Shown: positions 1,298 through 60,806 of the stretch, one piece after another
How the letters are laid out: each line of letters starts with the position of its first letter
Position numbering within the stretch: the first letter of the stretch is position 1
Origin: Styela clava
Lineage: Eukaryota
Assembly: GCF_964204865.1 (NCBI RefSeq)
Contig: NC_135253.1
Coordinates: 4,526,001 to 4,590,000, forward strand
Reading direction: 5' to 3'
DNA length: 64,000 bases
Notes under the pieces: model-generated
Told to the model about the DNA's origin: nothing
Database searches by the model: none
The model's input: the letters and a program-made list of their open reading frames with translations, nothing else
Program-made: the position numbers and the translations under genes

Positions 1298-2487
1298 CAA
1301 TAATCTGGCAACCATTGCTTCACGAAACTCTGATTGCGATATGGCGCCGTCTTCATCTTGATCAAGTTCGTTGAACACGTTCCAGGTACTTTTCAGATCT
1401 TTCTGATTTTTTAGTTGAACCTTCTGGTCACCCAATTTCAATTTACAAGAGTATTTTTTGTGTAGGAACCAACCAGCTAAATAAAAGAGGGAAAAACTAA
1501 AAAAAAGGTAGAATAAGCATCACAGTTGCATGTAACCTAACGATTTTACTTTTTAATTACCAGTAAGTAAGGCAAAGACATTGAGGAATAAGGAAGGTAT
1601 TTCCGAATGAAATTAAAACCTACTCGTAAGGATAACTTGGTCGTTTATTGTCCAAATGACAGCAATTTAATCTATGATGCATTTCATTTGGTCCATGTGA
1701 CGGCAATGTTACCTAGTGGGCAGGCGAAAATGATTTATTGAATGATAATAGGTACTGGTAATTTCTACAATTTGGGAATCTCAAAACAGTATCAATAACT
1801 CACAATGGAATTCAACCGTTGAATTTCCATTCCTACACGATCCACAGTTACAGCAAAATAGGTTGCATCCCTTCCCGTTTCCACTACCGGAACCACAGCA
1901 CTTCCTGTGGCGCCAACTGCTAACTTTGGCGCAGTCTTTGCAAAAGCCTGTGAAATAATCAGGTTTAAAACGTTCTCATTTCTAAAACATTTCATAAAAA
2001 ATTGGTTTAATTCCTATCATTCATTTTTTGTAAAATGTGAAGAAATAATCAAGACAATGTCTCAAACGCGTTTTTGAAATTGGAATTACCACTGAAAATG
2101 TATTTGCAAACAATCGATCACGTGCGATGAGATAATCTGCATATACGATTATTAAAGTTTACATTATCAGAAAAACTTGAAAGGTGGTTCCTATAGCTGA
2201 AACAGATAATATCTGATATGACGTTGAATGTATTCATATATAAATCCTGAATCAGCACTAGGGATATCCCAAATAGAAAAAATTCGCTGATGTCTTGAAT
2301 AAAACAAAATTGACCATATTTGATATTCGGATATCAAAATACAGTTAGAAAACCGAAATAAACGGAGCATGCGTTTACCAATATATAATTTTTCACACTT
2401 ACCGTGTTCTCCACGATCACAGCAAATTCCTGAAATTTCCGCTACGGCAAACAGGAGGAATAAGGCAAGAAGTAAAAATTTAACCAT
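1298..2487 (-). CDS. Secreted Cys-rich (Diedel-like) + EF-hand protein, copy A (partial; exon 4 lies left of the window)
   Basis: Exons 2403-2487 (MVKFLLLALFLLFAVAEISGICCDRGEH), 1804-1947 (GFCKDCAKVSSWRHRKCCGSGSGNGKGCNLFCCNCGSCRNGNSTVEFH), 1298-1476 (SGWFLHKKYSCK...DQDEDGAISQSE...ARLL). GT-AG junctions, phases 1/1/0, near-identical to copy E. Confidence 0.85.
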
Positions 2488-4980
2488 TGTAAATATATAT
2501 CCCAATTGAGATTTCTAAAAATATAATTGCATTAAAAAAGATATTTCATGGCCAGTGTTCTTCAATGTCCAATAGTATTGAGCTACAGCGAGGAAGTAGT
2601 CAATTAGGAATATATGCCTTCGAAGGAGGCAACTAAATTGCATACTACATTGTTCTTTTACGAATGCGTAGAACTAGAGGATACTATGTATTTTCGATCG
2701 AACCAATGGTGGTTTCTTTTTCAGAATCTATGTTGCAGATTTTGCGTTCTACTCTTAGAAATATATACATAAATGAATACACATTAATCTACAAACTGAA
2801 GCGAACTTCAGACTACCTATATTAATCTATATGCAACATAAGAGCATCACAAACATCCTAGTTGCGAGGGTGTCCAATCTGGAAAGTGGAGAAATTGCTT
2901 AAATTCCTTAACCTTGTTCATTTGCATGACTCTGGACACATATGTTGCATAACATTGTCTTGATACACTGCACGTACATCCGTTTTTCACTGTCACAATA
3001 CCGCTTTGGAAACTTGAGAAAAGTGATATTCAGCTATTGTCCTTTTGTGAGTCATGAAGATCGATCTACTTCAATGCGGGTTGTATTAAGGGTAAAGGCT
3101 GAAAATAGTCCCCGAGAGAAGCTTGAAACAAATTCTATGGGCTATAACTTGGAGTAGAGTCACGAAATTTTGTTCAGAGCGGCTTTCTTATTTTATAACA
3201 GATCACATACCAATAAAGATCATAACTCAGCTTCTGCTTCGTTACTTCTAACAAATAGTATTTTCGTGAATATAAATCAAGTTGATAATATAAAAACAAA
3301 GTTGATAATATTATTAGTGAGTAAATGAATTCAGGCATCTTCAATGTGGATCTGAGGAAACATATATCAACACCAGACTAAACAAAGGAACAAGTACAAC
3401 AAATTACATCAACAAGTTATTAATTTCCACAATATAGCACTTCTCTATCAGTGTAATATCAATATAAGACATGTGTCTTTTGTCAACAAATTCTAAACAT
3501 TACAGGGCGAACAGTCATTTTGGCCGAACAAGAAAGGGTATTTGTTGAACCAAATCAGAATTGATTGTAAAACAACAAAAAGTCGTTGAATTTAACAAAA
3601 TATGCATCATGAATTTGATCATGTTTATTATATATATATATATATATAACATTCCGAATACACTGGAGTATAGATAATAAGAAAGACGACCTGCCAAGTC
3701 AAGAGCATGACTTATAAAATATTTTCGTTTTCGACTATTCAAAATTTTGAAAGGAATAAATTTTTTTCAGAGACTCTCACACAAAAAATATTTGTTTTGA
3801 TGAGCAAGAGGTTTCACTTATGAATGAATGGAAATTCCATTAAGTCACAATATTGTGTCAAAAAACATCAAAAACAGATAATTAAAACAAGATTGTAATA
3901 ACATCATGTGAATTGCATAATATCTATATACCACATCCTATTATTGACATATCATTTTTGAAAACCTTGAATTATAGCAAGTTTAGCAAAATGCATCATT
4001 AAAATTAACATAGAAATGTACAGATGCTATTCCTATATCACGTTGACAGTTCCAATGATAGGCCAATGCAGAATATTTATAAGGATTTTTTTACTCATGC
4101 TCCAAATATAGGTAAATCTATTCTCGTAATACGAAATGTAGCGAGCCAGTCTATTAGGATATTCTCAAAATTCAGCATCAGATGAAATAACTAATTGATC
4201 AATAGCACCGAAGTATAAGAAAAATAAAATGATATACTGCTGATTTCAAATCTGTGCATTAACCCTGCTAAAACGCTTAAAGAGATAATGATCTATACCA
4301 GGGCTTCCCAAACTAGGGGCCACGAAACGAATTTTAGGGGCCGCGAAACGAATTTAGGGGCCGCAAAGAGAACATCAATTTTACACAAAGTACTATATTT
4401 GTTGTACTTTTTCAGACTAGCAAAATTGAAACGACGCACTTTGAGAATGACAAGAATTTTACGAATAAATGGTTCAAATCAGAAATTTTCTAGACCAGAT
4501 TGAAATCTCCAGTTCAGAAACCTTCTCTGTAACTAATTTTGTTCGCTCACTTTACATCAAGTTGTATAAAAGGACTGAAACCTATGGGTAGGTCAATTGG
4601 CTAACACAGACAGTCCCCGAACTAGTAATAGAACTAATATAAGAAAGCATAACATAATGGAACTGATTTTACTGTATGAATAGTCAAGCTTTTTGTGATA
4701 ACACAGAACAATACAATATACTTTTTTCAATATCGAATCTTCAAGTAACATTTTTAAAATACCGAAACATGAAGACAAAATTACCTCATTCAAACCAAAT
4801 TCTTGACATCACGAAAAATCACATTATTGTTCAGCATTGCAATAATGAATTAGTTAAATTTAAATCGTGTTTATCAGGGTTCTTGATAAATTAACAATGA
4901 GAGATCGTGATGTTGAAAATATTTCTAGTTGAATTGGATTAGCTACTTGCAAAATGTGAAAGAGATTTTGAGAAGTTTTC

Positions 4981-7900
4981 TTATGTTTCTGTTTTTTCAA
5001 GATCTTTGTCAAATTCAGCTGCTTGGATCATTCCGTCGTTATCAGCATCAAGTTTCTGGAATTCCTGCTTAATAAGATCATCAAGATCTTTGCTTTGTTC
5101 CAAGTCCTGTCCGTCTTGCTCGGTAACGACATCAAGAAGGGCCAATACATCTTCTTCGTTGTTGGAGTCCAAAACATGGGAAGCAACTAGTTGACCGGAT
5201 TCGTTGTCCTGGTGATATAAGATAAAAGTGCTGTTAGGGCAATTACTAGATAGTGAGTCACGCCTTACTACCATATAAGCCTAACCCTAACACACTAGAG
5301 ATGAACTGATACCACTTTCCGCGCCGATACCGATCCGAGACCAACAGAAAAAACGCCGACACGGATATTTCGAAAAGCCATATCCCGATACTATGTAACC
5401 ATTGCTTTGGGTGTTCAGGGCAGACGAGTTAAAACGATAGTCTGTGAGCATTATTCATAGCACGCTTTATTTAAGCCTGAAAAAGAGATATTCCAGATAA
5501 TAGGAAATTGATGTTTGTGATCCTGATGTATTAATTGATTCGGAGGCATTGTGCACTGACGTTCGTAAATTAGGTGTTCAATTAGAAAATTCATTTTGTG
5601 CAAATATAACTTCGTATTTTACACATTGGAAAATATTCGATTGATATATATATATATATATATATTTTCATAATTACCATGCCAATATAAAAATTTGGCA
5701 GCACAAATAGCCAAATTAGTTAAAAGGTAACGACACAAGTAATTTCAACATTTGTATTCCAACTTATTTTTAAAAGCATTCTGGATCAGATGAAAAAGCT
5801 AAATATATCGGTCTACATTTAACCGATACCGAAAAAATGACCGATATTGGCGATGCCAATAACAATACATCGGCCATTCTCAATAACACACACGATTCTG
5901 TACGCCATTTTACCAATTTTTTGCTAAATTAAGCAATGTAAGATTTCTTTGGTAAATAAAGAACTTAATTGGTTGATGTACAGTACAGTGGTTTATCTCA
6001 CCAATAATCTGGCAACCATTGCTTCACGAAACTCGGATTGTGATATAGCTCCGTCTTCATCTTTATCAAGTTCATTAAACACGTCCCAGGTATTCTTCAG
6101 ATCTTCCTGATTTTTTTGTTGAACCTCCTCGTCTCCCAATTTCAATTTACAAGAGTATTTTTTGCTCAAAAACCAACCAGCTGAATTGAAATGAAAAAAA
6201 AAAAAAAGCATCGCAGTTGCATGAAACTCAACGATTTACTTTTAATTACCTTTAACTTGAATCACCGGTCTACACAATGTAGAGTTTCAGACTTTGTTAT
6301 AAAAACGATCGAGCAATGCTCAAATATATGGGCACGAAGGTGGGGGCATCAAGGAATAAAGAAGGCATTTCCGGCTGATATTAGTTTATTTTTAACGGTA
6401 ACTTGGTCATTTATTGTCCAAGTAACAGCAATTTAAACACTGAGGCATTCCATGGTACTTTCAAAACAGTATCAACAACTCATAAAGGAATGTAATCAAT
6501 GCACGTCCATTTCTGCATAATCCACAGTTACAGCACAATATGTTGCATCCTTTCCCGTGTCCACTACCGGAACCACAGCACTTCCTGTGTCCCCATATGC
6601 TAACTTTAGCGCAGTCTTTGCAGAAGCCTGTCAAAATATAACGTACAGCACTATCCAACTTTTTCAATCCTAGAACAGATTCCATTTGAAAGGGAATTAA
6701 CTTGTTACAAGAACACCATTCATTTAAGTAAAATGTGTAGAAATACTCTAGACCAGGGATCGGCAACCTACGGCCCGCGGGCCGGATCCGGCCCGCGGAG
6801 CACTATAATCCGGCCCGCGACGCTTCACTAAATTATGGTAACAAAACATCCGTTTTGACGAATATATTCTTTATATTATAACCTAACAAATATATAATTC
6901 ACAATTACTCGTTTATTGAGCATATAATTTAATTATTATTAAGCAAATGTCAACAAAACGCAGAAAAGTTGATGCTAAGTGCAAAGGGTTCAATGGCGCC
7001 GAAAATATGCAAGTGAATTTTATGAGATGCAATGAGGAAATAAATCTATACTCTATTCGAGAGATGTATCACTGCTTGATTTTTATTATAAAAAGTACCA
7101 TCCGTTCGATTTTTCAACTTAAAATATGTGCGGCTCGCCAATGACTTGCACCCTTAATTTTGGCCCGCGAGCGACAAAAGGTTGCCGACCCCTGCTCTAG
7201 ACCATGGCTGCCCAACTCGCAGGCTGCATGTGGCCCGCCAGGCTGTTTACAGCCCGTCCTTTTAAATGAGTTTATAAGCAGACTTTTGAATTTTCTAGCA
7301 TTTTATTTAGGCTAAAGTGGACATCGATGTTCAAGTTTTTTTTTATATTTTTTGCAGAACTGCGCGTTCTGTTCCACAAACTCGAAAGCTACTGTGCGAT
7401 CATCGGCGACAAGACGCTGAGGAAAATTATAGGAATGAATTTGCAACCCAAATTTTCAAATTCATTTTGATTATTATCTCGTGTCGACTTTGACCGTAGT
7501 GAAAAATATCTTTGCTACTGGCTTCGGGATTTGTTGTATTATTTTTTTGCATATAGTAAAACTCATGGGATCACGTCACTGCAGATCGGTTCAAAATTCT
7601 GATAAAATTTATTTATTGGCATAAAATTCACGCGACATTTGGCGCACATTATGCTCATTTAAGAATTGACACTTGAAATAAATAAATAAATAAAAACATC
7701 ATAACGCGAATATAACACTCAATTTTGACGTCTTTGTCTGTTAGTGAAAAGTGTGTTCTCGTCAGAAATCCGCCAGTGTGTTGTGCTGTCTAAACGTTTG
7801 ATTGAGCGATGCGTAAGTGACGTGCCGCGGTTAGATCACGTGTTACCAGTAGGGATGGGAATTTCAGGGAAAACACTTTAACCGTTAACCGGGTCAAATT

Positions 7901-9073
7901 AATTGGTTAACCGGTTAACGTTTGACGTAATAATTGCTTCTGACTTATGGAAGTATTTTAGTAAAACCCGAATTCGTTATTAAATGTCATTTATATTGCA
8001 AATTTTCAGTTTTCGACGTGCAAATTCTACTCTGAGATATCATAAAAAAAAACATCAACTGCGCACTTGTTGGACGACATTGAATACACGATTTTGTAAT
8101 AAAGTCGTGAACAATATATTTCGACCGAAAACTGATTCTGAATAATATATCATTGTCAAATTTTCATAATCAGCAATCTTGGTACTTCAATTATTTTTCA
8201 CAATTATTGGGTCTTTACCGGTCCTTACCAATACAATTAATAACAATCTCTCGAATTAAACGCCACAGAAGATAAATTTGCGATGACGTAATCATTTTTG
8301 AAGAAATTTTACATTATAAAAATGATTTGTACCTGGGACGTCAGTTAACGATTAAAATAAATTGTAACCGTTAACCATCTAAAATCCGTTAACCGGTTAA
8401 CTATTCCCAGCCCTAGTTACCAGACATTAGAACAGTAAACTGCTACTTTAATATTCGAATATTTTGCTCAGCCCCTACCCTGAACTTGCTTATAACGTAT
8501 TTTGTAATTTCTAACGTAAATCAGAACTTAGCTGGGGTTCAAGTTTGGTAAAAACATTTGCGGCCCGCAATGAATTTTCTCATGTGAAAGTGGCCCGCGA
8601 CACCAAAACGATTGGGCAGGCCTGCTCCTGCCAGACAATGTCACAAGTACTTTTCTGAAAGTGGAATTGCCACTGAAAATATAGGTGCAAAAAATCTCTC
8701 ACGTGCAAAGATCTACATATACGTTTATTGAAGTCTACATTATCCGGAAAACTTGAAAGATGATTTCTATGACTAAAACAGACAATATCTAACAAGATGT
8801 TAAATGACCTCATTTATATATAAATCCTGAATCCGACCCTGGGGATATCCCAATAGAACAAGATTTGCTGATGTCCTAAATAGAACAAAATTAATATTCG
8901 AATATCAAAATAATCGTTAGAATAGAGAACTAAACCATTTAGACCGGCAAATGCGTCCAGCAATCTATAATTTTTTCACACTCACCATTTTTTCCACGAC
9001 CACAGCAAATTCCCGAAATTTCCGCTACGGCAAAAAGCAGGAATATAGCACTAATAACTATAAGATTATTCAT
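4981..9073 (-). CDS. Secreted Cys-rich (Diedel-like) + EF-hand protein, copy B; exon-2 donor mutated (truncated variant or pseudogene)
   Basis: Exons 8986-9073, 6484-6627, 6002-6180, 4981-5208, all with open frames. The intron-2 donor reads ATGAGT at 6483 instead of GTGAGT. The paralogous TAA is AAA here, giving a KTET extension. Confidence 0.75.
5296..5883. mobile_element. Ac-type hAT MITE in intron 3 of copy B
   Basis: Starts TAGAGATG, has subterminal CCGATA repeats and 8-bp TSD TAACACAC (5288-5295 / 5884-5891). Same insertion in copy D. Confidence 0.75.
6754..7194. mobile_element. Charlie/Buster-type hAT MITE (internal deletion derivative)
   Basis: TIRs CAGGGATCGGCAACC / GGTTGCCGACCCCTG, perfect TSD CTCTAGAC, GGCCCGC subterminal motifs. 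Retains a transposase-like N-terminus MSTKRRKVDAKCKGFN at 6947. Confidence 0.85.
7203..8624. mobile_element. Older Charlie/Buster-type hAT element in intron 1 of copy B
   Basis: Imperfect TIRs CATGGCTGCCCAA / TTGGGCAGGCCTG, GGCCCGC motifs, left TSD CTCTAGAC and degenerate right TSD. Confidence 0.7.
7850..8415. mobile_element. Ac-type hAT MITE nested in 7203-8624
   Basis: TIRs TAGGGATGGGAAT / ATTCCCAGCCCTA, perfect TSD GTTACCAG (7842-7849 / 8416-8423), subterminal GTTAACC repeats. Confidence 0.9.
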
Positions 9074-12000
9074 TGTAAATATCCCCGTTGAGATCGAGAG
9101 TTATTACTATAAATATGATTTTATTGAAAAGATATGTTTATGGTCAGCGTTCTTCAATGTCCAATAGTACTCAGTTATAACGAGAAAGAAGGCAATTGAG
9201 AATGCCAACCTCCGAAAAACGCAACTAAATTGCATACCACATTGTTCTTTCACGAATGCGGGAGTGATACTATGTATTTTCGTTCAAAGCAAAGGCAGTT
9301 TCATTTTTAGAATTCAGATAGTTTTATGGTACAGACTTTGTGTTTTACTCTCGGCATAATATATATATAAATCCATATTAGTCTACAAACTAAATCTAAC
9401 TTCAAGCTATCTATATTAATCTATGGAACATAAGGGCATCACAAACATCCTAGTCGCACGGTCGTGCGATATGGATAATAAAGAAACTGCTCCCAGATAC
9501 GTTAAATTCCTTAAACCTGTCAATTTACATGACCCTGGGCACGTATGTTACATAAAATTATTTTGATACACTGCACGTACATCCGTTTTCCGCTGTCACA
9601 ACCACAGGACTGCTTTGGAAATCTGACGAAGGTGATAATCAGCTATTGTTGCTTTCTTGCATTATATGAGACATGAAGACCTGTCTTCCTCAATGCGTCT
9701 TGTATGAACGGTGAATGCATAAAATAGTCCCTGACAGAAGCTTGAAACAAAGTCTATGGGCTTTGACTTGCATTATAGTCACGTAATTTCGCTCAGAACG
9801 GCTTTCTTATTCTATAACAGATCACATACTCAGATAGATCATAACTCAGCTGCTATCTCGTTGTTTCTAACAAATAGTATTTTCGTGAACATTATGTGAC
9901 TCACCACAACATTATTAAACGGGCAAAATTCACAGATATTTCATTACTTTATTAATCCTATACGCTGGTCGGGGAGGGTGGAACGTGCGCGATTGAGCAA
10001 AGGGTTACTTGGCGTTTCTAGAAATAAGTTATCACTTTTTAGCAGGTGCGATTTAAAAAAAATTTGCATGACTCTAAAAATATCAAAAGTGGAAGGCCGA
10101 AGGCATTTGACGACGGTTGATAAAATAACGAAAAAAAAAAAAAGTGTCCTCTTCCATATCGAAGTCAGTATATATAGAAGTGGCGGACTCTGTAATTTGG
10201 GTGGTCAGGCCAGGAATCTCTAATACACATCCCAAATTCGATTAGAATCGATGACGAGTACTGTGCAAATGCCAATGTCTACTACTCTACTACATTACCT
10301 CGGTAAAAGAATCAACAAAGTGGAGAATATTTTTCTATTTTGCTCCAACTCAAGACCAAACAAAAGAACAAGTACAACAAATTACATTAACAACAACATT
10401 TTATTTCCGCTGTACAGCACTTATATATCAGTGTAATATCAATCCAAGACATGCTATCTTGTCAGCAAGTGCGGACAATACATTGCGAACACTCGTTTTG
10501 CCGAAAAATAAAGAGTATTTGTTGAACCAAAACGGAATTAATTGTAAAACAACAAAAAAATTATTGAATTCAACAAAATATGCATCATGATTATGTTCAT
10601 TATATAATATTTCGCATACATTGGTGTATGGAAAATGATAGAGACGACCTGCTAAGTTAAGAGCATGACTTACAAAGTGTTTTCATGTCCTTATATTAAA
10701 AATTTTGAAACGGATATTTGTTTACGGATATTAGCTGTCAATAAATGGAAATTCCACTAGACCACATTATTGAGTCAAAAAGCATCAAAAACAAAAAAGT
10801 ACAAACATACTGTGAATTGCATAATGTCTATACCACATCCCAATAATAACATACAGTATATTTTGCAATATTGTCGATAACTATTATTGGAATATACTGA
10901 TACTAGTTAAATCCCACTTGGAAATTCGATAATAATTCATGTCACATATGAAATCAGATAAAAGATTTTAGAATGCCAGTCATGTCAAACTTGCACCTTT
11001 AAGAGGGTCAAAAATCTTACTTTCATTCAAACAATGTCATCAGAACTCGCAATCATCATACAATAAATCTGAATGATTGGTATCTAAAGTGATATAATAT
11101 ATATTCAATAGCATTAAGCTATAGTGAATAACAATATTTAAATACCAATTTAAAATCTACATCGTTCTTGAGCGTAATTCTCGCCCAATAACCTTCATCG
11201 ATTTGAATATTTTCAAATAGCAAGAGCGATTAATAGATGTCGCGACCCAACCTTTTTCCACTTGTCATTGTCAAAAACTGCCATCTTCATAAGCTGGCCG
11301 AACATATTTTTTTTCTAAATGCATTTGATCACAGACTTTTAATGCCGTTGAGAAGAACCATACTGCACTGGAACTTGAGTCATAAATCACAAAATGTTGA
11401 TCTTGACATACAGTAATCTAACATAAATCCAAACTGGCGACATTTTGAATTCTACGAAATTTCTGTATTTTACGAAGTGCCACGCATCGTTACATTAGTT
11501 TATAATAAGTCAATGAGAACGCATAGTTAGGGTTTGTGATGTTTCTTTTTTTTACTTTCCGGAACGAACGCAGTTTCTTAAGGTCACGTTACATTGAACA
11601 ACTTCGGGGTTACAATTAACTTAAAATTTTATTAAATTTTTCATTAAGTATATGTATTTACAGCGACTAAACCGTGATTGTTTTGGTAAAGTGAAGTACT
11701 TACCATATTTACCTTACCATATATGCCAGATTCCAGTGATCAAAAAAGCCAAGACAAGGAACCAAAAAGCGAACAAATTTATCAAGTACAAAATCCTCAT
11801 GATTGAAACTCTTGGCACAATAGGGGATTTGCACAGTTGGCAATACGCTGATTCAGATCAGTTGATTTAGTGAGCCACACAATTGTTTTTTCCCATTGAA
11901 AGTTGTATTTTCGGTTGCTATTATGATGATTTCCACCTCAGCATAATGAAGGATTCAAAAACAAAAAGTAATTATTGAACGGTAGACCCAGAATGCACAC

Positions 12001-12421
12001 CCGACACAATACAGTCAAGCTGACCTCCATATAAAAAAGTTTGAAAAAAAGAAATGATAGGCGGATACCAATATTTTACAGGTGCCGCTTCAGTATATGT
12101 GATATAATTAAATGTTCCAGCTAAACTTGCGATATACCTTATAGAATTTCCCCTATAGCTTACTATTAAAAAGAGTGTTGGCGATTACAAACGAGTTTAC
12201 ATGTTTGAAACATGTATTGCCGTACTAACACCGTGTTCCCCGTTAATAATACCTAGCCTGAAATGATTGTAACCCTGTTCTATTTTAGGAGAAACATGGT
12301 AGCGAAGTTTCGAACTGTTTATCAGAGCATTCGCGAGATCAAATTTAAATTATTGCAATTCAACTAGAGCTTATCGGAAGGCATAATGACAATTTAGTTA
12401 TTTCTTTACAACTATTTATAG

Positions 12422-12814
12422 AACTAGGGAGCTATGCTCAGATATATGGACACGTAGAGCATTTCGCCAATTCCCAAAAATCATACCACAGTCCACCGTT
12501 CGGCATAAAAGAATTTCCACTTTCGCTAAGCACTATACCAGATACACCGGCAAACGCCGTGAACGGAATCAGCTGATGTGCGTCCGCAGAACATTCAGTG
12601 AGGTCATAGAAAACAAAAAACCAATCCAACAAAGCTAAGAGAAATATTTAAAATAAATAAAAGTAATGGCCTTCTAAAAAAATTTCATCTTTAACCACTG
12701 AAAATTTGAAGAAATTGGTCCAGTAATCAAAGAGAAAAGCGACTTTTTAAGTTTTCCACTAGGTGTCCAAAAATAATGCAAAACGATCGTTATGTCCACT
12801 AACGTGTCCAATAA
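12422..12814 (+). mobile_element. DINE-1/HINE-like non-autonomous repeat
   Basis: 5' GAGCTATGCTCAGATATATGGACACGT and 3' TATGTCCACTAACGTGTCCAATAA. Same family at ~49529-49867 and 55902-56471. Confidence 0.6.
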
Positions 12815-13337
12815 CAACTAAAAACTGACGTAGCTAAGAAATAGGCTATTGTTGCACGCTGAATTTTTTATTTCATGTGATTGTACTAATAGACACTAAA
12901 ATATCAATAGACATCAAAAATGCCAAAACGCCCTGATCATTTTGTAACACAAAGAAGCGGATTTTATTACTTGTTACTTGTAACGTAGTTCTAATTACAA
13001 AACCTCAAAGTTAACATGTTCAGTCATCATTTGTGTCTAGTAATCTGATTAAATAAGACAAAAATATTCTTTTAGACTTAGAACCTCAACTGGAACTATT
13101 AGTATATATATGTAGGCTAGTATATAGAGTCTTGAATATAAATATTGATAATAGCATGACAGGATTATCGTTGCACAGATGTTTATATGGTTAAATCTAA
13201 TTCATGTTATCAGGGTTCTAAGTAGGGTGACAATGAGAGGGTAGGGTGTTGAAAATATTTATAGTTAAATTCGATTAGTTATTTTCAGAATGAGAAAGAT
13301 ATTAGGAATAATTTTGCAATAAATCTTCTGTTTCTGT

Positions 13338-26604: not shown

Positions 26605-29359
26605 TTATTCAAGGTCTTTGTCAAATTCAGCTGCTTGGATCATTCCGTCGTTATCAGCATCGAGTTTCTGAAATTCCTGCTTCATAAGATCACCAAGATC
26701 TTTGCTTTGTTCCAAGTCTTGTTCATCTTGCTCGGTAACGACATCAAGCAGAGCCAATACATCTTCTTCGTTGTTGGAGTCCAAAAAATGGGAAGCAACT
26801 AGTTGGCCGGATTCGTTGTCCTGTTGATAAAAATGAATTATTTGGTGTAAAGTGTTGTTGCGAATTCAAATTAGGTACATTCAGATATATTTAATTTAAA
26901 TGTAAGTATAATTCGTTTTAAATAGCTGTAAAGGTACGCCCATGATTGAGCAATATATAAGGGATTTCTGCGATGAAAAGCTTAAACGGTAAATATACGC
27001 TAGTCAGGGTTGGCGAACCACTGACCACAAAGTGACCAACCAAGTTTATTTCGGTGACCCGCCAAATCACGAATCAATGCAAAAGACATACTAAGATTTC
27101 AATGATGAAAATTGGTAATAAAATCGTGCCCAATTCAATCTACCAATAAGTGTACTGCGACTGCCGTAAACGCAACCAAGGTGGAGTTGTACGCACTCTG
27201 AGAAAAAGGGATGATTGCGCAACCATAGGCGGTGAGTCGATAAATCGAATATAATTAAAAGAGAGAATTCTCAATAAAATGAACAATATCGTTATTACAG
27301 GTCCAAAATTGGGATTTTCCACGGCGACAAGAATGTTGAAATTCCACCTGGCCATTATGCTCAATTACAAATTAAGACGATATCATGTAGCCTACGGTCT
27401 AAATCCGTGTGGTCTAAGGTTGCGAGATTGAAGGACCGCAAAAAAATTTCAGAGGCCTTGCGGACCGCAGTCGGGAAAACCCAAAAGTGATCAAAACACC
27501 ACGAGCTCAGTTACTTTAAATATATTAACGAATGAGAATTTACAGTTCTAATCAGACTTAGCCTATGTTGCATCAGTGGCCTTTTTTATTAATTAATCTA
27601 AGGAAGATATATAAAGCACTAACGAAACAATGTACTGTTTCTTGCTTTTGGTACTGTTTCAGATATGCGTTGCGTCACTGCTGTCACATGGCCCACGCTT
27701 GAAATAGGGGTGTATTTGTACTAACATAAAGGCACAAAACGTCTTTCCATATAAGGAGTCCATATATGCTCAATCAATTTTCTATTTTACTCAACTGAAT
27801 TGTATTAATTAGGATTGTAGCTGGGATGAAGAAGTTATAAGGTAAAAGAGTCGATGGTTTACGTTGAATGCAATTATTACGACATGACATTAATATCAGC
27901 TGCCTGCGCTCTTTTACGACGCACGTTTCTGCATTCCGTTACGCGACTACTGTCAAAGATGCATTAATACACACTACAATCAAACGATTATAATACTTGT
28001 GGAAAAGATGCCGAAACACGTTCCTCACTGATGCAGACATTGAATAAATATAAATGACCCACGGTCTTCTTTTCAATGATGAAAATTAAGTTTTGGCTCA
28101 TTCAATGAAAAAGGTTCGCCACCAATGCGCTAGACTAGATGGTACACCGCGGTGCTCTCTGCATATCTCACCAATAATCTGGCAACCATTGCTTCACGAA
28201 ACTCTGATTGCGATATGGCGCCGTCTTCATCTTGATCAAGTTCATTGAACACGTTCCAGGTACTTTTCAGATCTTTCTGATTTTTTAGTTGAAGCTTCTG
28301 GTCACCCAATTTCAATTTACAAGAGTATTTTTTGTGTAGGAACCAACCAGCTAAATAAAAGAGGGAAAAACTAAAAAAAAGTAGAATAGGCATCACAGTT
28401 GCATGTAACCTAACGATTTTACTTTTTAATTACCAGTAAGTAAGGCAAAGACATTGAGGAATAAGGAAGGTATTTCCGAATGAAATTAAAACCTACTCGT
28501 AACGATAACTTGGTCGTTTATTGTCCAACTGACAGCAATTTATTCTATGATGCATTTCATTTGGTCCATGTGACGGCAATGCTACCTAGTGGGCAGGCGA
28601 AAATGATTTATTGAATGATAATAGGTACTGGTAATTTCTACAATTTGGGAATCTCAAAACAGTATCAATAACTCACAATGGAATTCAACCGTTGAATTTC
28701 CATTCCTACATGATCCACAGTTACAGCAAAATAGGTTGCATCCCTTCCCGTTTCCACTACCGGAACCACAGCACTTCCTGTGGCGCCATATGCTAACTTT
28801 GGCGCAGTCTTTGCAGAAGCCTGTGAGATAATGAGGTTTAAAACGTTCTCATTTCTAAAACATTTCATAAAAAATTGGTTTAATTCCTATCATTCATTTT
28901 TGTAAAATGTGAAGAAATAATCAAGACAATGTCTCAAACGCGTTTTTGAAATTGGAATTACCACTGAAAATGTAGTTGCAAACAATCGATCACGTGCAAT
29001 GAGATAATGTGCATATACGATTATTGGAGTTTACATTATCAGAAAAACTTGAAAGGTGGTTCCTATAGCTGAAACAGATAATATCTGACATGACGTTGAA
29101 TGTATTCATATATAAATCCTGAATCAGCATTAGAGATATCCCAAATAGAAAAAAATCTCTGATGTCTTAAATAAAACAAAATTGACCATATTTGATATTC
29201 GGATATCAAAATACAGTTAGAAAACAGAAATAAACGGCGAATGCGTTTACCAATATCTAATTTTTCACACTTACCGTGTTTTCCACGATCACAGCAAATT
29301 CCTGAAATTTCCGCTACGGCAAACAGGAGGAATAAGGCAAGAAGTAAAAATTTAACCAT
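26605..29359 (-). CDS. Secreted Cys-rich (Diedel-like) + EF-hand protein, copy E (207 aa, intact)
   Basis: Exons 29275-29359, 28677-28820 (GFCKDCAKVSIWRHRKCCGSGSGNGKGCNLFCCNCGSCRNGNSTVEFH), 28172-28350, 26605-26820 (...EFDKDLE*). GT-AG and in frame. Confidence 0.9.
27005..28127. mobile_element. Non-autonomous hAT element in intron 3 of copy E
   Basis: TIRs CAGGGTTGGCGAACC / GGTTCGCCACCAATG, flanked by CGCTAG repeats. The empty site is visible in copy C (ATACGCTAAATGGTACACC at ~13718). Confidence 0.8.
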
Positions 29360-30872
29360 TGTAAATATCCCAGTTGAGATTAATAGTTATTTCTAAAAAT
29401 ATAATTGCATTAAAAAAGATATTTCATGGCCAGTGTTCTTCAATGTCCAATAGTATTGAGCTACAGCGATGAAGTAGTCAATTAGGAATATAAGCCTTCG
29501 AAGGAGGCAACTAAATTGCATATTACATTGTTCTTTCACGAATGCGTAGGACTAGGTGATACTATGTATTTTCGATCGAACCAATGGTGGTTTCTTTTTC
29601 AGAATATATGTTGCAGATTTTGTGTTCTACTCTTAGAAATATATACATAAATACAAATTAATCTACAAACTGAAGCTAACTTCAGACGACCTATATTAAT
29701 CTATGCAACATAAGAGCATCACAAACATCCTAGTTGCGAGGGTGTCCAATCTGGAAAGTGGAGAAATTGCTCCCAAATACGTTAAATTCCTTAACCTTGT
29801 TCATTTGCATGACTCTGGACACATATGTTGCATAACATTATCTTGATACACTGCACGTACATCCGTTTTTCACTGTCACAATACCGCTTTGGAAACTTGA
29901 GAAAAGTGATATTCAGCTATTGTCCTTTTGTGAGTCACGAAGATCTATCTTCTTCAATGCGGGTTGTATCAAAGGTAAAGGCTAAAAAGTCCCCGAGAGA
30001 AGCTTGAAACAAATTCTATGGGCTATAACTTGGATTAGAGTCACGAAATTTCGTTCAGAGCGGCTTTCTTATTTTATAACAGATCACATACCAATAAAGA
30101 TCATAACTCAGCTTCTGCTTCGTTACTTCTAACAAATAGTATTTAAGTAGGCTACAACAAATTACATCAACAAGTTATTAATTTCCACAATATAGCACAG
30201 CATATAGCAGTTTAATATCAATCTAAGACATATGTCTTTTGCCAACAAATGCTAGACATTACAGGGCGAACAGTCATTTTGGCCGAATAAGAAAGGGTAT
30301 TTGTTAAACCAAATCAGAATTGATTCGTTGAATTTAACAAAATATGCATCATGAATATGATTATGTTTATTATATATATATATATATAACATTCCGAATA
30401 CACTGAAGTATAGAAAATAAGAAAGACGACCTGCCAAGTCAAGAGCATGACTTCTTCATTTTCGACTATTCGACTTTCTTCATTTTCGACTATTCAAAAT
30501 TTTGAAAGGAATAAATTTTTTTCAGAGACTCTCACACAAAAAAAATTTGTTTTGATGAGCAAGAGGTTTTACTTATGAATAAATGGAAATTCCATTAAGT
30601 CACAATATTGTGTCGAAAAGCATCAAAAACAGATAATTAAAACAAGATTGTAATAACATCCTGTGAATTGCATAATATCTATATACCACATCCTATTATT
30701 GACATATAATTTTTGAAAACCTTGAATTATAGCAAGTTTAGCAAAATGCATCATTAAATTAACATGGAAATGTACTGATGCTATTCCTATATCACGTTGA
30801 CAGTTCCAATGATAAGCCAATGCAGAATATTTATAAGGATTTTTTTACTCATGCTCCAAGTATAAGTAAATC

Positions 30873-33397
30873 CAGTGGCGGCGCGTCAATAGGGCCAACC
30901 GGGGCAATGCCCCGGTTGTTTATTCGGTATAATAAAAAATATTCGAAAAATACCTCAATATCGGTTGCACAGACTGTCTCCACTAGCCATATTCTCCCGA
31001 CATGGTTCATTTTTCGCTCGCAAAGCCTTCGCCGAACGTCGACGGGGCGACGCCGATTTTGCCCCGGTTGCTCATTGTATATCGTATTCTCTCTTTTATC
31101 TTCCACTCGCCGCGTTTGTTTTCTGTTTCTTTTACTAAATCATCGGGGCTAGCCCCGAAATTATGACGACACAATGCCGACGTTTCTTACAACAACGTGT
31201 TGACATATTCACGCATTCCTTCTTGTTCGTTGGTTGCTTGAAGAGTTGATAGTTTCCTCGCCTTCGTTTTTGTCGCTTGTTTCGCTATTTGAATCAGTTA
31301 GAGACCTTTAGTCCATTTGCTTTCGATTTTCCACATTCCTTTTGAGCTCCTCACTTCTTTCCGGCTCCGCATTTCTTAGCCTTAGACCTCATAATGAATA
31401 AGGTTGATGCACTACTTCGCACTCCGTTTTCGCAGCTGCCGCTGGAACAAAAATTAGAGGTACAACGTCTTGGGCCTTATCAACCAAAAAATTGTTCACT
31501 GGAACAATCCCATGACGGAGGAAAGCGTCGGCGTACATTCTGCGCAGAAACTTGGTATAAAAAACACGAATGGTTGTGTTACAGCCAGGACAAAAATGCA
31601 TTTTTTTATTTTTATTGCCTACTTTTTGCTACCGCCCGTGACTCACGTTGGTGTAAATTTGGTTTTAGAGATCTTAAACATCTTTCCGAGCGTGCCAGGG
31701 ATCATCAATCTTCTATGGAGCATCTGGACAATGCAGTAAAATACCGAACATTCGGAAATGTTAATATTGCAGTGTTACAGCCTTACAACGCGAAGTCAAA
31801 ATTGATAGCTCAAACTTATGACGGCGCGGCAGTCATGAGTGGGTCGAAACATGGTGTTCAAGTATATATAAAAGAAGATTTTCCTCATGCGCATTTTTTA
31901 CATTGTTATGCACACCAATTTAACCTCGTTATTAAAAATATGTGTCTTGATACCCCTCTCGTCCGTATATTTGTTGCAAATGTTTCGGGGTTTTCTTCAT
32001 TTTTTTCCGTTTCGCCGAAGCGCTCTGACCTCCTTCGCCAGATATGTAGCCGCCGTCTCCCAGCTTGTGCACCAACACGTTGGAACTTTCAATCACGTGT
32101 GGTGCAGGGCGTGTCCGAAATTAGGTCTGAACTCATTGAGTGTTTCAGTGGCATTCAGAGCTCTCCGGTTTGGGACGAACGCTCTGTGAGGGAGGCCGCA
32201 GGTCTAAAGCGTTTGCTAGAAGATGGTGAGTTTTCATTTTTTCTCGCTTTTTTCTCCACAATATTCTATCACGTGGATGTATTATACGGCGCATTGCAGT
32301 CAAGGCTAATGGATGGAGCGTCTGTGCAGTCGTGTATTTCAGACTTCGGCGATGCTGTATCTCGTATCCGGGAAACAATAAAATACGACGACACATGGAG
32401 TGCTTCTTTACGCCGCGGGCAAACAACGCAGCGTTTGATTTTGCCTGCAAAGGAATGCTGTGACATTCTGGTGAATCAAATAGGCGATCGTCTGCGCACT
32501 GAACACCTTGCCGCGTTCTCTTTGATGAACCCCAAAAATTTTTCAAAATTTGCTCGTCAATTTCCCATCCATTTGTTGGCTACTGTCTCCAAATTTTACC
32601 CCATGATAAACGTGGGTAAATTAGAAAATGAATTGCGATGTATATACACCAATCAAACTTTTTTGAACATCACATCAACTTGCGCGCTCTATGGGTTCCT
32701 CATAGATAACACTCTAGTAACTACTTTTGCGGCGTCTGCAAAATTTCTGGACATCATTTTGACGACGCCTATTTCTTCCGCCGACGCAGAGCGAACATTC
32801 AGCACGCTGAAGCGTATTGAAACGTTTCTCAGAAACACAATGAAGCAAGATAGATTAAATTCCTTGGCTGTTTTATCCATTCACAGAGACGTTATTTCTG
32901 GGATGCATGACTTTAATCAGCGCGTTATTGAGCATTTTGCTTCCAAGAAACCGCGGCGTGTTGCATATATGTTCAAGCAGTAGAAGTCTAGCAGCATATA
33001 TATCTATGAACGAGCGACGCATGTCCTTATCTTTGCATTAACTTTCCTTTCTTCATAGTAACGTTTTAAACCTTATTTTAGGTTTTGTCTGCTTTCCCCA
33101 AGTTTCTGTTAATATGTCATTGTATTTATCTGGGTAAATATTGTCTTTTCTTTTGAAAGAGGTTTCAAAATAAACTATGTCTATATTTATTAATCCCTTG
33201 ACTTGGACCGGTTTTAAAGACACTTTCTTATCGTTAAAAATTGTCGCTTTTGCCGATTGGTTAATACCGATGGAATGGTTTTTATACTCATAAAATGATG
33301 GGAGAACTTACAGCGCTCATCCTGTCCCCGTAGATGGGGGTGACTTGGTCCCGCAGTAGCTTGCCCCGGTTGTCAAAATGACCACGCTCCGCCACTG
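30873..33397 (+). mobile_element. hAT (Tip100/ZMYM1-like) DNA transposon, recent insertion
   Basis: TIRs CAGTGGCGGCGCGT / ACGCTCCGCCACTG, perfect 8-bp TSD AGTAAATC (30865-30872 / 33398-33405), subterminal GCCCCGGTT repeats. Empty paralogous sites at ~4111 and ~35921. Confidence 0.95.
31394..32983 (+). CDS. hAT transposase (TTF-type Zn finger, YDGA..MSG, CxxH, C-terminal dimerisation domain), internally deleted
   Basis: 529-aa ORF with WLCYS..F.F.CLLF...H....H, AQTYDGAAVMSG, HCYAHQFNL, PTRW and SSADAERTFSTLKRI...RLNSLA motifs. Confidence 0.9.
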   Translation: MNKVDALLRTPFSQLPLEQKLEVQRLGPYQPKNCSLEQSHDGGKRRRTFCAETWYKKHEWLCYSQDKNAFFYFYCLLFATARDSRWCKFGFRDLKHLSERARDHQSSMEHLDNAVKYRTFGNVNIAVLQPYNAKSKLIAQTYDGAAVMSGSKHGVQVYIKEDFPHAHFLHCYAHQFNLVIKNMCLDTPLVRIFVANVSGFSSFFSVSPKRSDLLRQICSRRLPACAPTRWNFQSRVVQGVSEIRSELIECFSGIQSSPVWDERSVREAAGLKRLLEDGEFSFFLAFFSTIFYHVDVLYGALQSRLMDGASVQSCISDFGDAVSRIRETIKYDDTWSASLRRGQTTQRLILPAKECCDILVNQIGDRLRTEHLAAFSLMNPKNFSKFARQFPIHLLATVSKFYPMINVGKLENELRCIYTNQTFLNITSTCALYGFLIDNTLVTTFAASAKFLDIILTTPISSADAERTFSTLKRIETFLRNTMKQDRLNSLAVLSIHRDVISGMHDFNQRVIEHFASKKPRRVAYMFKQ

Positions 33398-37032: not shown

Positions 37033-40000
37033 TTAACTCTGCTCAATAGCAGTTAGACAGCCTTTCAGCACTTGGACAATAGCCTGAAAAAAAGAAAAAA
37101 AAATGTTTTATGCAAACTCGAGTATAGTTGTTGCAGTAGCTAATGTTAATATGAATCAACCATTAGCAGGAAGACGTAAATTCAGATGATATTGTCAATC
37201 CATTGTATCTTCCGACCAGAGCTTCCAACATAATGGAGCGGTGGTTCCCACCCGGTGGGAAATTTGACGACTGCAGGTGGGAAATAGAATGCTCCTCTAA
37301 AAAATGTACGCACAACAACAAAATTATTAAATATTACACAATGAAAATCACAATATATGACATGAAGCGGAAATGACTCCCATTCAATTATGGAAACTTT
37401 ACTAAAATATCACGTTGTTCGCCATGATATTCTCATGGTGCTACTTAATTTATTTTGATTTTTGGTCGGCCGATAACAGCCTCACAGACATGTCTCGAAC
37501 GAGCACCAATGCTGACTAAACCTGTCATAAGTTAAATGAAAATTTTATTTTCATTTTATAGAACTAATTTGAGGGAAATAATTACCTTGGAATGTTTGAC
37601 TTCAAGTTCCCCAAGCTCGATTAAATTCTTCCTAAAAGCTGTAACACGTCGACCTTTGAACTCTGTTAATTCCTGTTTACCAACTTCAGAAAGCTTTTCA
37701 AACTTCTCTCGAGTTTCAACTTGATTCTTTTCTGCCTGAATACAGAAAATTGTAAATGGAAACTGGATCAGTATGAGCAATAAGCGAGCAACAAATACAA
37801 GATTCAAGAATATTTCAATTTTCAATAGAGCAAATATTAAGAGAAAATTACAAACCTGGTTTACATTCTTTCCCTTTGCTCTTGCTTTATCCAATTCTTT
37901 ATTTGCAGTTTCATAATTTGCCATAGCTCTAGCACGACGATATAGCAAGTCCTGTATAGTAAAACAATACAAAATAAAATATTCTGAACTATGTTTTAAT
38001 GTAATAATGTCCAGCAAAAGAGGATAATATTTCTTATATATCATTCAATCATTTGTTCAATAACAGTCAACTAACCTTGCATGCCTGAGTGTCACGCATA
38101 TAATAACGCAGAAGATCTGATAATTTTAAATCTTCATCTGATGAAACTCTCGACATCAGTTTCTGGAAAAATTAGACAATACAGTATCAATCAATTTGAC
38201 AGTCATTATATACATAATTGAAAATAGGCAAATATATTTTAATGCTAGTTGAGAATAGTATGGTGATCTAATTTATCAAAAACATAAAATCACATAAAAT
38301 GACATCTTACCCTGATTTTTTCTAACGTGTCATGGACTTTCAACAACATCCTAAATATGAAAAACAAAAATGAGTATGCAGGAATATAAATATTTTATAA
38401 ATATTATGTAGAACATGAGCCGGTAGATTCAAGATCTACGTTGCTACCACCGCATGATAATCAATAATCCAAATATGCAATTTTTAAACGAATTAAGCTT
38501 CATATAGAAATAAAATCTTTGCTATTGTATAAAATAGGAAAACTAACCAAGAACCTGGCAATCACAGATAAAAGCTTTAACAAAGGGATAGCCAAAGGGA
38601 TTAGGTGAGTGCAATTTAACCTGTAGGATTCAGGATAATAAAAATGAAATAAATGCATTTTGGGATGAAGCTACAGATATATTACAGCTACATACAAGAC
38701 AACCCAACTATACTGCTTTATTATCATTAAAACTGTTGTTTATATGGTTATTCAGACTTCACATTTGGTTTGAAACTTGGAGTGTCTATTTATTTAGAAA
38801 AAAAAACCTCAAACATCTGCATATGAATTACCTTATTACCTGCCAAAATTTGATACAAATATGACCACGAATGTACTTACCACATATTGTTGTTCCAACT
38901 TAATCTAGCAGCATGTTAATAGAATTTATTGCACATGATCAACAAGTATTTTATTCTGATATTCTATGGATCTGGTCATAAAGAAATCCTATATATATGG
39001 CCAACAGTTGGCTATGAACGTAGTCAAAGGATGGCTTAATGAAAGTGTAACTGCTAAGAAACTACCTGTCGAATTGGGATTGATGACTGCTTCCAATAGA
39101 ATATTCGATTGTTGCCAGAGACTGCAGATTCCTGGCAATAGTCAAGCAATCATCTGCACATTCTGAATATAAAATGCAAATCAGTATGTTAGAGTGATGT
39201 GGGTGATGTAGTGTTGAATTAGATGCTATCTATTTCACCAGAAATTCTCAGTTGTGACTCTTTCTGTAATCAGAAAACAAAAAATCTTACGTCTATGAGT
39301 CTTTGTAAATTTATCAGATTTCCCTGTTGCATCTTTAATTCTGCTGTGATATTCTGTGATGAATGATTTCTCATGTTCAAAAAAATCATCAGTATCCTAG
39401 ACAAGAAAATAGCTTTTAGTTGCATGAAATATCAAGCAAGACAAGAAATTGTATCTTAGTAATATCACTATCACAAGGAGCATAATTACGGTAGATGATA
39501 AAAAGTATGCAGACTTGAATTGACAAGGATCGAATGTTAGTCATGCCACAAATAGCAAAGGATTCGACTCTGATTACTACACTTCCTGGATTCAAATTGA
39601 CACAAGACAATTGAATTAAACATTGGTTTGGACTGTGATAATTGATGACCAACGCCACGTCAGAAAAAATGATTTGAATGTGTGTCACCACAGCTAATAG
39701 TCTATACCAGGGGTGTCCAACAGGTGACCCATGGGCCACAATCTGGCCCGCCAAGCAATTTAATGTGGCCTTTAAACACTCAAGTTTTTTTCCCATCACG
39801 CATGAAATTTGAATTCGAAATTATCCGCTGTGTTTCTAAATGTTCCGCCACATTGCCCACTGTATTTAATACTGCAAGACCAACTGACAAAATATCTTGG
39901 CACATCCCCAGTCTATACTAAAGCATTCGGAGCACAGCTGAAGAAGAAGGAAAATAAGTGAAAATGTAGCAACCTTTTGTCCAGACAAGATCAATGCCTC

Positions 40001-60087: not shown

Positions 60088-60806
60088 ACCTAGACGGTGG
60101 GACAACTTGCTAAAATCTGGACTGTCCTGACTAAACTGGGACAGGACTATGATATGCCTATGTTTAGGTCAAAAATATACACTGTAAAGCAGTGCATTAT
60201 GAAATGCTGTTCTATTTGGTGATTATATGGTATATCATTATTTTTTATTAAACTCTCGTCTTTATTCTTGTTCAGGGAAAGTCTTTGTGAATTCTGAAGT
60301 TCAGATATGCTGGTCAGTGAAAAAAGGTAATACTACTTTTTTATCAATTTATCTAATCTCTTTTTGTTATAAGAAAATTTGCTCAAAGCAATGTGATGCA
60401 CATTCGTCAAAAGCATTGGAAACTTATCTCCGAGCACGGGTGGCTACTGGAGAGCTGAGACTATAAAAAGTATAGTGATGCATTGAATTCTGAATCCTTT
60501 GGCATAAATGTTCGTCTTAAAGTTCTTTCAATTCTTCATTTGGTGCACACTGCATCCCGATTGGTAATTTGTCACGCAAAAGTTTTATTGTACCATGCCA
60601 GCTCATTGCCAATGTGGCAAGTACTTTTTAGTTGTATTTTATACATGGCCCACACTTGACTGTTGAAATTGAAAAGAATTTTGTTACAAGTAAGTGTCTG
60701 TAAATAGTTATCTGAATAAAGTCTTCAAAGTTGTTTCTTAATGATACTGTATTAGAAGATAAGTTAATAAGAATCTTTACTTCACTTGCAGGAAAAAGAA
60801 AGAGAA

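Follow-up and report, generated by a model that had tools for sequence, protein, structure and literature searches.

Analysis of a 64,000-nt stretch of the 377-Mb assembly of Styela clava (C4:4526001-4590000, hereafter the window) showed the presence of five paralogous genes on the minus strand, at positions 1298-29359, encoding small proteins which combine a cationic cysteine-rich domain with an acidic EF-hand pair. They are best explained, with somewhat less than even confidence, as a secreted two-module S. clava family, in which a fast-evolving cationic knot is joined to a conserved EF-hand pair and the products would most likely act as effectors of defence or recognition. A preliminary description, made from the letters of the window alone, had placed the array in a non-insect animal, which agrees with its origin from a tunicate.

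Gene models were obtained by a six-frame motif scan and splice-site inspection. Each gene is represented by four exons of 85 or 88, 144, 179 and 216 or 228 nt, with intron phases 1/1/0; acceptors are CAG or TAG, and donors are GTAAGT, GTGAGT or GTGAGA, with the exception of the exon-2 donor of copy 2. The sizes, phases and places of the exons in the five paralogues of the preliminary description were verified, but only four copies of exon 4 lie in the window (that of copy 1 is outside it), and the donor of copy 2 is broken. Exon 1 encodes a hydrophobic signal sequence ending in ..LFAVAEIS[GA], followed by xCC; exon 2 encodes CKDC and the core CCG[SG]GSGxGxGCNxxCCxCGxCRxG; exon 3 encodes the twelfth cysteine (Cys) and EF-hand 1; exon 4 encodes an acidic stretch, EF-hand 2 and the C-terminus ..EFDKDL[EK]. 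The motifs described earlier (xCC, CKDC, the Cys-rich core and both EF-hand loops) were all found again, except that the core of copy 3 begins with CCGGGSG, not CCGSGSG. Intron 1 measures 2358 nt in copy 2, compared with 304-455 nt elsewhere in the array.

The RefSeq proteins P0029 and P0009 contain the exon peptides of copies 3 and 4, respectively, as exact substrings at positions 1/31/79/138, and the first and the second junction each split one codon; therefore, the NCBI models use exactly the exon borders of the preliminary description. The family is already present in RefSeq as "uncharacterized protein", that is, it is annotated yet uncharacterised. The 300 bp upstream of the ATG have a mean column identity of 79% across all five copies and contain a TATA-like ATTATATTTTTAG about 35 nt before the ATG, as well as a CCATTGG box; this stretch may serve as a promoter or a trans-splice acceptor.

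The exon-2 donor of copy 2 (window positions 6482-6483, minus strand) carries a G-to-A change at intron position +1, giving ATGAGT. The upstream twin of this exon, C4:4501073-4501216, retains GTGAGT, as do all other copies. Read-through would meet a stop 8 codons on and is predicted to yield a product of about 85 amino acids (aa) with the signal peptide and the Cys domain, without the EF-hands. Copy 2 is likely a pseudogene or a truncated variant; the donor change itself could equally reflect a pseudogene, a polymorphism or an assembly error.

The products are 207-216 aa long and consist of two modules. Module 1, encoded from the last part of exon 1 through exon 2 into the beginning of exon 3, comprises about 67 residues and is cationic, with a net charge of +7 to +11 and an isoelectric point (pI) of about 9. 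All subfamilies have a hydrophobic N-terminus followed by [AG] and then xCC, from which secretion of the products, as had been proposed, is predicted; by the -3/-1 rule, the signal peptide would be cleaved directly before xCC. Twelve Cys, the number given in the preliminary description, are present in all copies and invariant in all subfamilies. Their spacing in the window type is CC-7-C-2-C-10-CC-9-C-3-CC-1-C-2-C-20-C, and with the variants of the subfamilies it is CC-7-C-2-C-10(12)-CC-9(7,10)-C-3-CC-1-C-2(1)-C-20(22)-C. Module 1 probably forms a six-disulfide knot. Searches for a known counterpart of this domain gave no usable match in the ESM Atlas (residues 20-80) and only weak EF-hand matches in a PDB sequence search; the best PDB match of the exon-2 profile, the TB domain of LTBP1 (E 0.077), was judged to be due to chance. 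The Cys patterns of granulin, the TB domain, vanabin, WAP and prokineticin do not appear to fit the spacing.

Module 2, encoded by the rest of exon 3 and by exon 4, is acidic (net charge -19 to -25, pI 4.1) and contains one EF-hand pair, the two hands of which are separated by an acidic, helical insert of about 40 residues. The loops, DQDEDGAISQSE and DADNDGMIQAAE, follow D[QKE][DN]EDG[AI]ISQSE and DADNDGMIQA[AST]E in all copies of the window and are canonical 12-residue loops, defined by D1, D/N3, D5, G6, a hydrophobic residue at position 8 and E12. The divergent subfamilies have M, K or L as residue 6 of hand 1 and retain D1, D3, D5 and E12. On protein P0001, the Pfam models EF-hand_1 (35.9 bits, cut-off 25.4) and EF-hand_5 (37.8 bits, cut-off 25.9) each matched two stretches, and exon 3 alone gave 26.6 bits with a Pfam EF-hand model. 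By its fold, the EF-hand half is a paired-hand four-helix lobe. The two EF-hands are thus genuine, as had been claimed, by Pfam scores, loops and fold, and the pair is expected to bind Ca2+.

The ratio of nonsynonymous to synonymous substitution rates (dN/dS), calculated for the four gene types of the window, amounts to 0.95 in the signal-peptide exon and 0.57 in the Cys exon (exon 2), as against 0.14 in EF-hand 1 and 0.21 in both the acidic insert and EF-hand 2 (EF-hand parts, 0.14-0.23); overall values between copies are 0.24-0.56. Nine Cys and several Gly of exon 2 are invariant despite its value of 0.57. Accordingly, constraint is concentrated on the EF-hand module, and fast evolution on the non-Cys surface of the knot.

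Tandem expansion, as described earlier, was confirmed, but the array is not limited to five genes. Searches of the S. clava genome with tblastn gave 20 matches for exon 2 (E 1e-26 to 4.5e-7, far beyond chance), 18 for exon 3 and 21 for exon 4, and no EF-hand exon from outside the family approached these matches. When chained, the matches represent about 20 loci, namely, 13 on C4, 6 on C1 and 1 on C6. A four-gene block is present in two copies, one formed by window copies 2, 3, 4 and 5 and the other by genes lying upstream, at C4:4499673-4528487; they are offset by 27-32 kb and are 92-98% identical, which points to a recent block duplication. Copies 1 and 5 are near-twins, with a synonymous divergence (dS) of 0.045. 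Subfamilies that are 37-46% identical retain the same architecture and all 12 Cys. Two fragments were found outside the window, an additional exon 4 with an in-frame stop (C4:4497063-4497293, plus strand) and an exon 2 with an internal TGA (C4:4467738-4467884, minus strand); the older end of the C4 cluster therefore holds decaying copies.

Within the protein databases searched, the family has so far been found only in S. clava. A profile of the five exon-2 peptides, compared with 1.84 billion protein cluster representatives (with 15 billion proteins behind them), matched five real clusters, of which the four looked up are all S. clava RefSeq proteins named "uncharacterized protein LOC1203...". 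Two other matches, P0006 and P0007 (a serglycin-like and a BACON-domain protein), were rejected as GSGSG low-complexity artefacts. All 11 matches of a full-length family profile belong to S. clava, and a word-seeded search with the Cys domain gave only S. clava proteins. The preliminary description knew of no account of such an array, and a literature search likewise found no paper describing the family, its loci or its accessions.

The Cys-rich part had been described as a Diedel-like domain. Diedel is Drosophila CG11501 (Pfam PF13164), and its homologues are present in granuloviruses and ascoviruses. This assignment was not borne out: PF13164 (gathering score 21.3 bits) had no match at E<=10 on the exon translations or on four full-length RefSeq proteins of the family, and the likeness is confined to the xCC start and about 18 columns. 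In a positive control, three viral Diedels, encoded by open reading frames (ORFs) on viral contigs of 134-170 kb and obtained by scanning IMG/VR with back-translated CNIFGCNC, scored 54-68 bits; related matches are named granulovirus proteins. A six-frame scan of the S. clava genome with PF13164 gave nothing at E<=10, which on its own is a weak negative, as control genomes were equally silent. An unfiltered hmmsearch with a hidden Markov model built from a 9-sequence Diedel alignment gave -9 to +3.4 bits, with a compositional bias correction of 11-25 bits.

Comparison of the Styela family with Diedel by hhalign gave a probability of 71.8% over 18 columns, with E 3.5e-5 for a single comparison, and aligned CNifCCnC--xCRxG with CNIFGCNCDGGCIEG. 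With the N-domain only, the score was 24.2, and the probability was 26% when the alignment was extended to 35 columns; after shuffling of columns, the mean score was 12.0 (standard deviation 2.75), and the observed score was reached in 1 of 300 shuffles. Pairwise BLASTP against viral Diedel gave E-values of 0.067 and, for P0005, 0.006, both for single comparisons. Compared with the SD2 loop of Diedel, the aligned stretch of Styela has additional Cys (CC for GC, and CC before G) and a GSGxG insertion of 5-6 residues.

Diedel has 10 Cys and two subdomains: SD2 consists of the first four mature residues, including CC, and of loop 60-89, and is held by four disulfides, of which two join the loop and the N-terminus, while the ferredoxin-like SD1 (beta-3_10-beta-beta-alpha-beta) is inserted between the N-terminal CC and the SD2 loop and continues after the loop (PMC3307722). 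The conserved SD2 loop is CGxGxCNIFGCNCDGGC. Like Diedel, the Styela proteins are small and predicted to be secreted, their mature chain would start with xCC directly after the signal peptide, and they have the local motif CG.G..CN[IV]F.C.C..C..G; the eight SD2 Cys of the viral Diedels match, by order, eight of the twelve Styela Cys (those in CC, C[NK]D, CGxG, CN[IV]F, xC, xC and C..G). Unlike Diedel, they have 12 Cys, carry a C-terminal EF-hand pair, which no Diedel has, and occur in a tunicate rather than in insects and insect viruses. In the Styela proteins, CC is followed by 7 residues before the next Cys and by 21 before the CC with which the Cys-rich loop begins, whereas in the Diedels compared about 26-31 residues lie between CC and the loop-opening Cys; with only 7 residues from CC to the next Cys, there is no room for SD1. 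The Styela loop is followed by a short hairpin and the EF-hand domain, with no SD1 helix or strand. By these comparisons, the proteins are not demonstrable members of the Diedel family, and the likeness to SD2 amounts to a short motif, above what composition gives, for which the label "shares a short motif with Diedel SD2" is preferred.

Among the explanations that differ from a defence or recognition effector, an extracellular Ca2+-binding protein with a structural or adhesive function in the tunic, blood or matrix is unlikely; it would be analogous to SPARC and have no immune role, the acidic EF-hand module binding Ca2+ or a partner in the matrix and the Cys knot stabilising or cross-linking the protein. 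The predicted secretion, the order of the modules (the Cys-rich one first, then the EF-hand pair), a very acidic C-domain, strong purifying selection on the EF-hand parts and a weak match to SPARC_Ca_bdg (20.1 bits, E 8e-4) would agree with this, but the match does not reach the Pfam cut-off of 22 and is confined to the region of the EF loops, follistatin and Kazal modules are missing, and core matrix proteins do not usually show lineage restriction, about 20 copies or a fast-evolving knot. Rather unlikely is a true, very divergent Diedel SD2 homologue, which would have retained the N-terminal CC and the Cys-rich loop, lost SD1, gained four Cys, become fused to EF-hands and served as a cytokine or anti-apoptotic signal. 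The order of the Cys, the construction of SD2 from the N-terminal CC and the loop, and the hhalign, shuffle and P0005 BLASTP results argue for it. Against it stand the silence of the Pfam model, the low HMMER scores with their large composition bias, the absence of any Diedel at E<=0.001 among the cluster representatives compared with the exon-2 profile, and the alignment of only 18 columns. Moreover, the motif was already in view when Diedel was chosen, so that the E-values of the single comparisons are too favourable; no sequences of intermediate type were found outside insects and their viruses, and the models of the Cys domain have low confidence. A reading of the knot as an authentic Diedel SD2 module that stands alone, lacks SD1 and is fused to an EF-hand pair loaded with Ca2+ is regarded as quite unlikely.

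The opposite charges of the two modules agree with another explanation, which is distinctly improbable: a cationic Cys-rich antimicrobial peptide precursor, in which the acidic EF-hand half would be a neutralising pro-region, proteolysed on release. Anionic pro-pieces are known in many antimicrobial peptide precursors, and cathelicidins have a conserved "pro" half and a variable cationic half, a division similar to that between the conserved EF-hand half and the variable cationic half of the Styela proteins; the broken donor of copy 2 would also yield a product without EF-hands. However, no conserved dibasic site lies between the modules (KK and KR occur in some subfamilies only), the invariant twelfth Cys is located past the putative cut, so that the halves may stay linked, and charge masking alone needs no canonical, conserved Ca2+ ligands. 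It is most improbable that the loci are largely non-functional, being annotation artefacts or decaying duplicates with no expressed product. The copy 2 donor, the upstream exon 2 with TGA and the additional exon 4 with a stop are in line with decay, but four of the five window copies retain frames, splice sites and all 12 Cys, dN/dS is 0.14-0.57 and not 1, the upstream 300 bp are conserved, divergent subfamilies keep the same architecture, and RefSeq models several isoforms.

The defence or recognition effector fits best because of the predicted secretion, small size, cationic disulfide-rich domain, lineage restriction and recent tandem amplification. The family has grown by tandem and block duplication, and in this scheme its role would lie in humoral defence or recognition, similar to that of immune effectors; the knot, with its fast-evolving non-Cys residues, would provide a variable recognition or effector surface. 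The EF-hand pair would be loaded with Ca2+ outside the cell and act as a conserved module for folding, solubility or docking that depends on Ca2+; in addition, it may neutralise the cationic knot. In marine invertebrates, the body fluids contain about 10 mM Ca2+; therefore, the EF-hands are read as loaded structural or docking modules and not as sensors, and the extracellular Ca2+-sensing proposed earlier is doubtful.

Several points weigh against an effector of this kind. Small size, a cationic and Cys-rich product, tandem expansion and fast evolution would also suit genes for toxins, reproductive proteins or matrix proteins. The signal-peptide cleavage site of this subfamily is ambiguous, lying between AVA and EIS or between ISG and ICC. 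None of the members of the clusters looked up came from transcript-type assemblies. AlphaFold models, computed from family alignments of 10 and 14 sequences, had a predicted local distance difference test (pLDDT) score of 26-45 for the Cys domain with one alignment and 27-35 with the other, and due to this low confidence the disulfide knot is an assumption; Foldseek against the PDB with the AlphaFold model gave EF-hand rows only (E>0.03), the Cys part being of low confidence.

Features of the gene family in the window and of its clusters in the genome. Positions are those of the window unless C4 or C1 is given.
Feature	Position	Strand	Details
Copy 1 exon 1	2403..2487	-	85 nt; ATG, signal peptide, xCC; ends in phase 1
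Copy 1 exon 2	1804..1947	-	144 nt; Cys-rich core
Copy 1 exon 3	1298..1476	-	179 nt; twelfth Cys and EF-hand 1
Copy 1 exon 4	C4:4525528-4525743	-	intact; 258-473 bp before window start
Copy 2 exon 1	8986..9073	-	88 nt
Copy 2 exon 2	6484..6627	-	144 nt; donor AT instead of GT
Copy 2 exon 3	6002..6180	-	179 nt
Copy 2 exon 4	4981..5208	-	228 nt; 4 additional codons ahead of stop
Copy 3 exon 1	14828..14915	-	88 nt; exact match to RefSeq P0029 (LOC120326487)
Copy 3 exon 2	14318..14461	-	144 nt; CCGGGSG variant; exact match to P0029
Copy 3 exon 3	13761..13939	-	179 nt; exact match to P0029
Copy 3 exon 4	13338..13553	-	216 nt including stop; exact match to P0029
Copy 4 exon 1	21652..21739	-	88 nt; exact match to RefSeq P0009 (XP_039247737.2, LOC120325698)
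Copy 4 exon 2	21204..21347	-	144 nt; exact match to P0009
Copy 4 exon 3	20627..20805	-	179 nt; exact match to P0009
Copy 4 exon 4	19617..19832	-	216 nt; exact match to P0009
Copy 5 exon 1	29275..29359	-	85 nt
Copy 5 exon 2	28677..28820	-	144 nt
Copy 5 exon 3	28172..28350	-	179 nt
Copy 5 exon 4	26605..26820	-	216 nt
Conserved upstream stretch, copy 5	29360..29659	-	300 bp upstream of ATG
Equivalent upstream stretches, other copies	2488-2787, 9074-9373, 14916-15215, 21740-22039	-	
C4 cluster, 13 genes	C4:4466927-4555359	both	chained tblastn matches
C1 cluster, 6 genes	C1:10136407-10163559		chained tblastn matches

Tandem repeats with a unit length of about 195-199 bp (2-4.4 copies, 77-89% matches) were found in the intergenic spacers that follow copies 3 and 4, at 15414-15807, 23888-24280 and 16744-17614; the arrays at 15414-15807 and 23888-24280 are related. 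A hAT transposase-like gene, located 2 kb past the start codon of copy 5, is represented by an intact 529-aa ORF (31394-32983, plus strand) with the hAT-family C-terminal dimerisation domain PF05699 (34.8 bits). An exon-sized ORF similar to the Vps5 C-terminal domain (sorting nexin BAR; 37556-38044, minus strand, 30.7 bits) is consistent with an SNX6-type gene noted in the preliminary description at 38881-38904. No Pfam model matched a 402-aa open frame at 60786-61994 (plus strand), in which Q, S, T and N are abundant; it may belong, as a large exon, to the gene of a low-complexity nuclear protein.

No living group is more closely related to the vertebrates than the tunicates, whose humoral immunity depends on secreted effectors which are lineage-specific and poorly catalogued. 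The family of about 20 recently amplified genes joins an unclassified cationic domain, with six putative disulfides, to a conserved extracellular EF-hand pair, a domain combination without a described counterpart, and offers a clean case of a young gene family with one old and one apparently new module. Its importance is potential. If the knot proves to be Diedel-like, it would be the first relative of the Diedel cytokines outside insects and their viruses, extending this family to chordates, and a stand-alone SD2 would make the SD2 knot look like an ancient, mobile module used in signalling or as an effector; if not, the knot would be a new disulfide-rich scaffold, worth a structure.

Like SPARC/BM-40, the Styela proteins have a Cys-rich module followed by an EF-hand pair that is likely Ca2+-loaded outside the cell, and both are secreted, in Styela by prediction. 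Unlike SPARC, they have no disulfide in the EF-hands and no match to the follistatin (FS) or Kazal models, are much smaller, and are lineage-restricted and multi-copy. SPARC_Ca_bdg (PF10591) gave its 20.1 bits on P0001 and 12 bits on the others, so that by these scores the family lies outside SPARC. The EF-hand part was also compared with single-lobe EF-hand domains, namely, the RASEF EF domain 2pmy, polcalcin, and the luminal EF pairs of MCFD2 and FKBP14. Unlike these, the Styela proteins carry no endoplasmic reticulum retention signal, their C-terminus being ..DKDLE or ..DKDLK and not KDEL, which rules out such retention; they contain the acidic helical insert of about 40 residues between the hands, and EF-hand 2 has an exit helix of only 6-7 residues, with which the protein ends.

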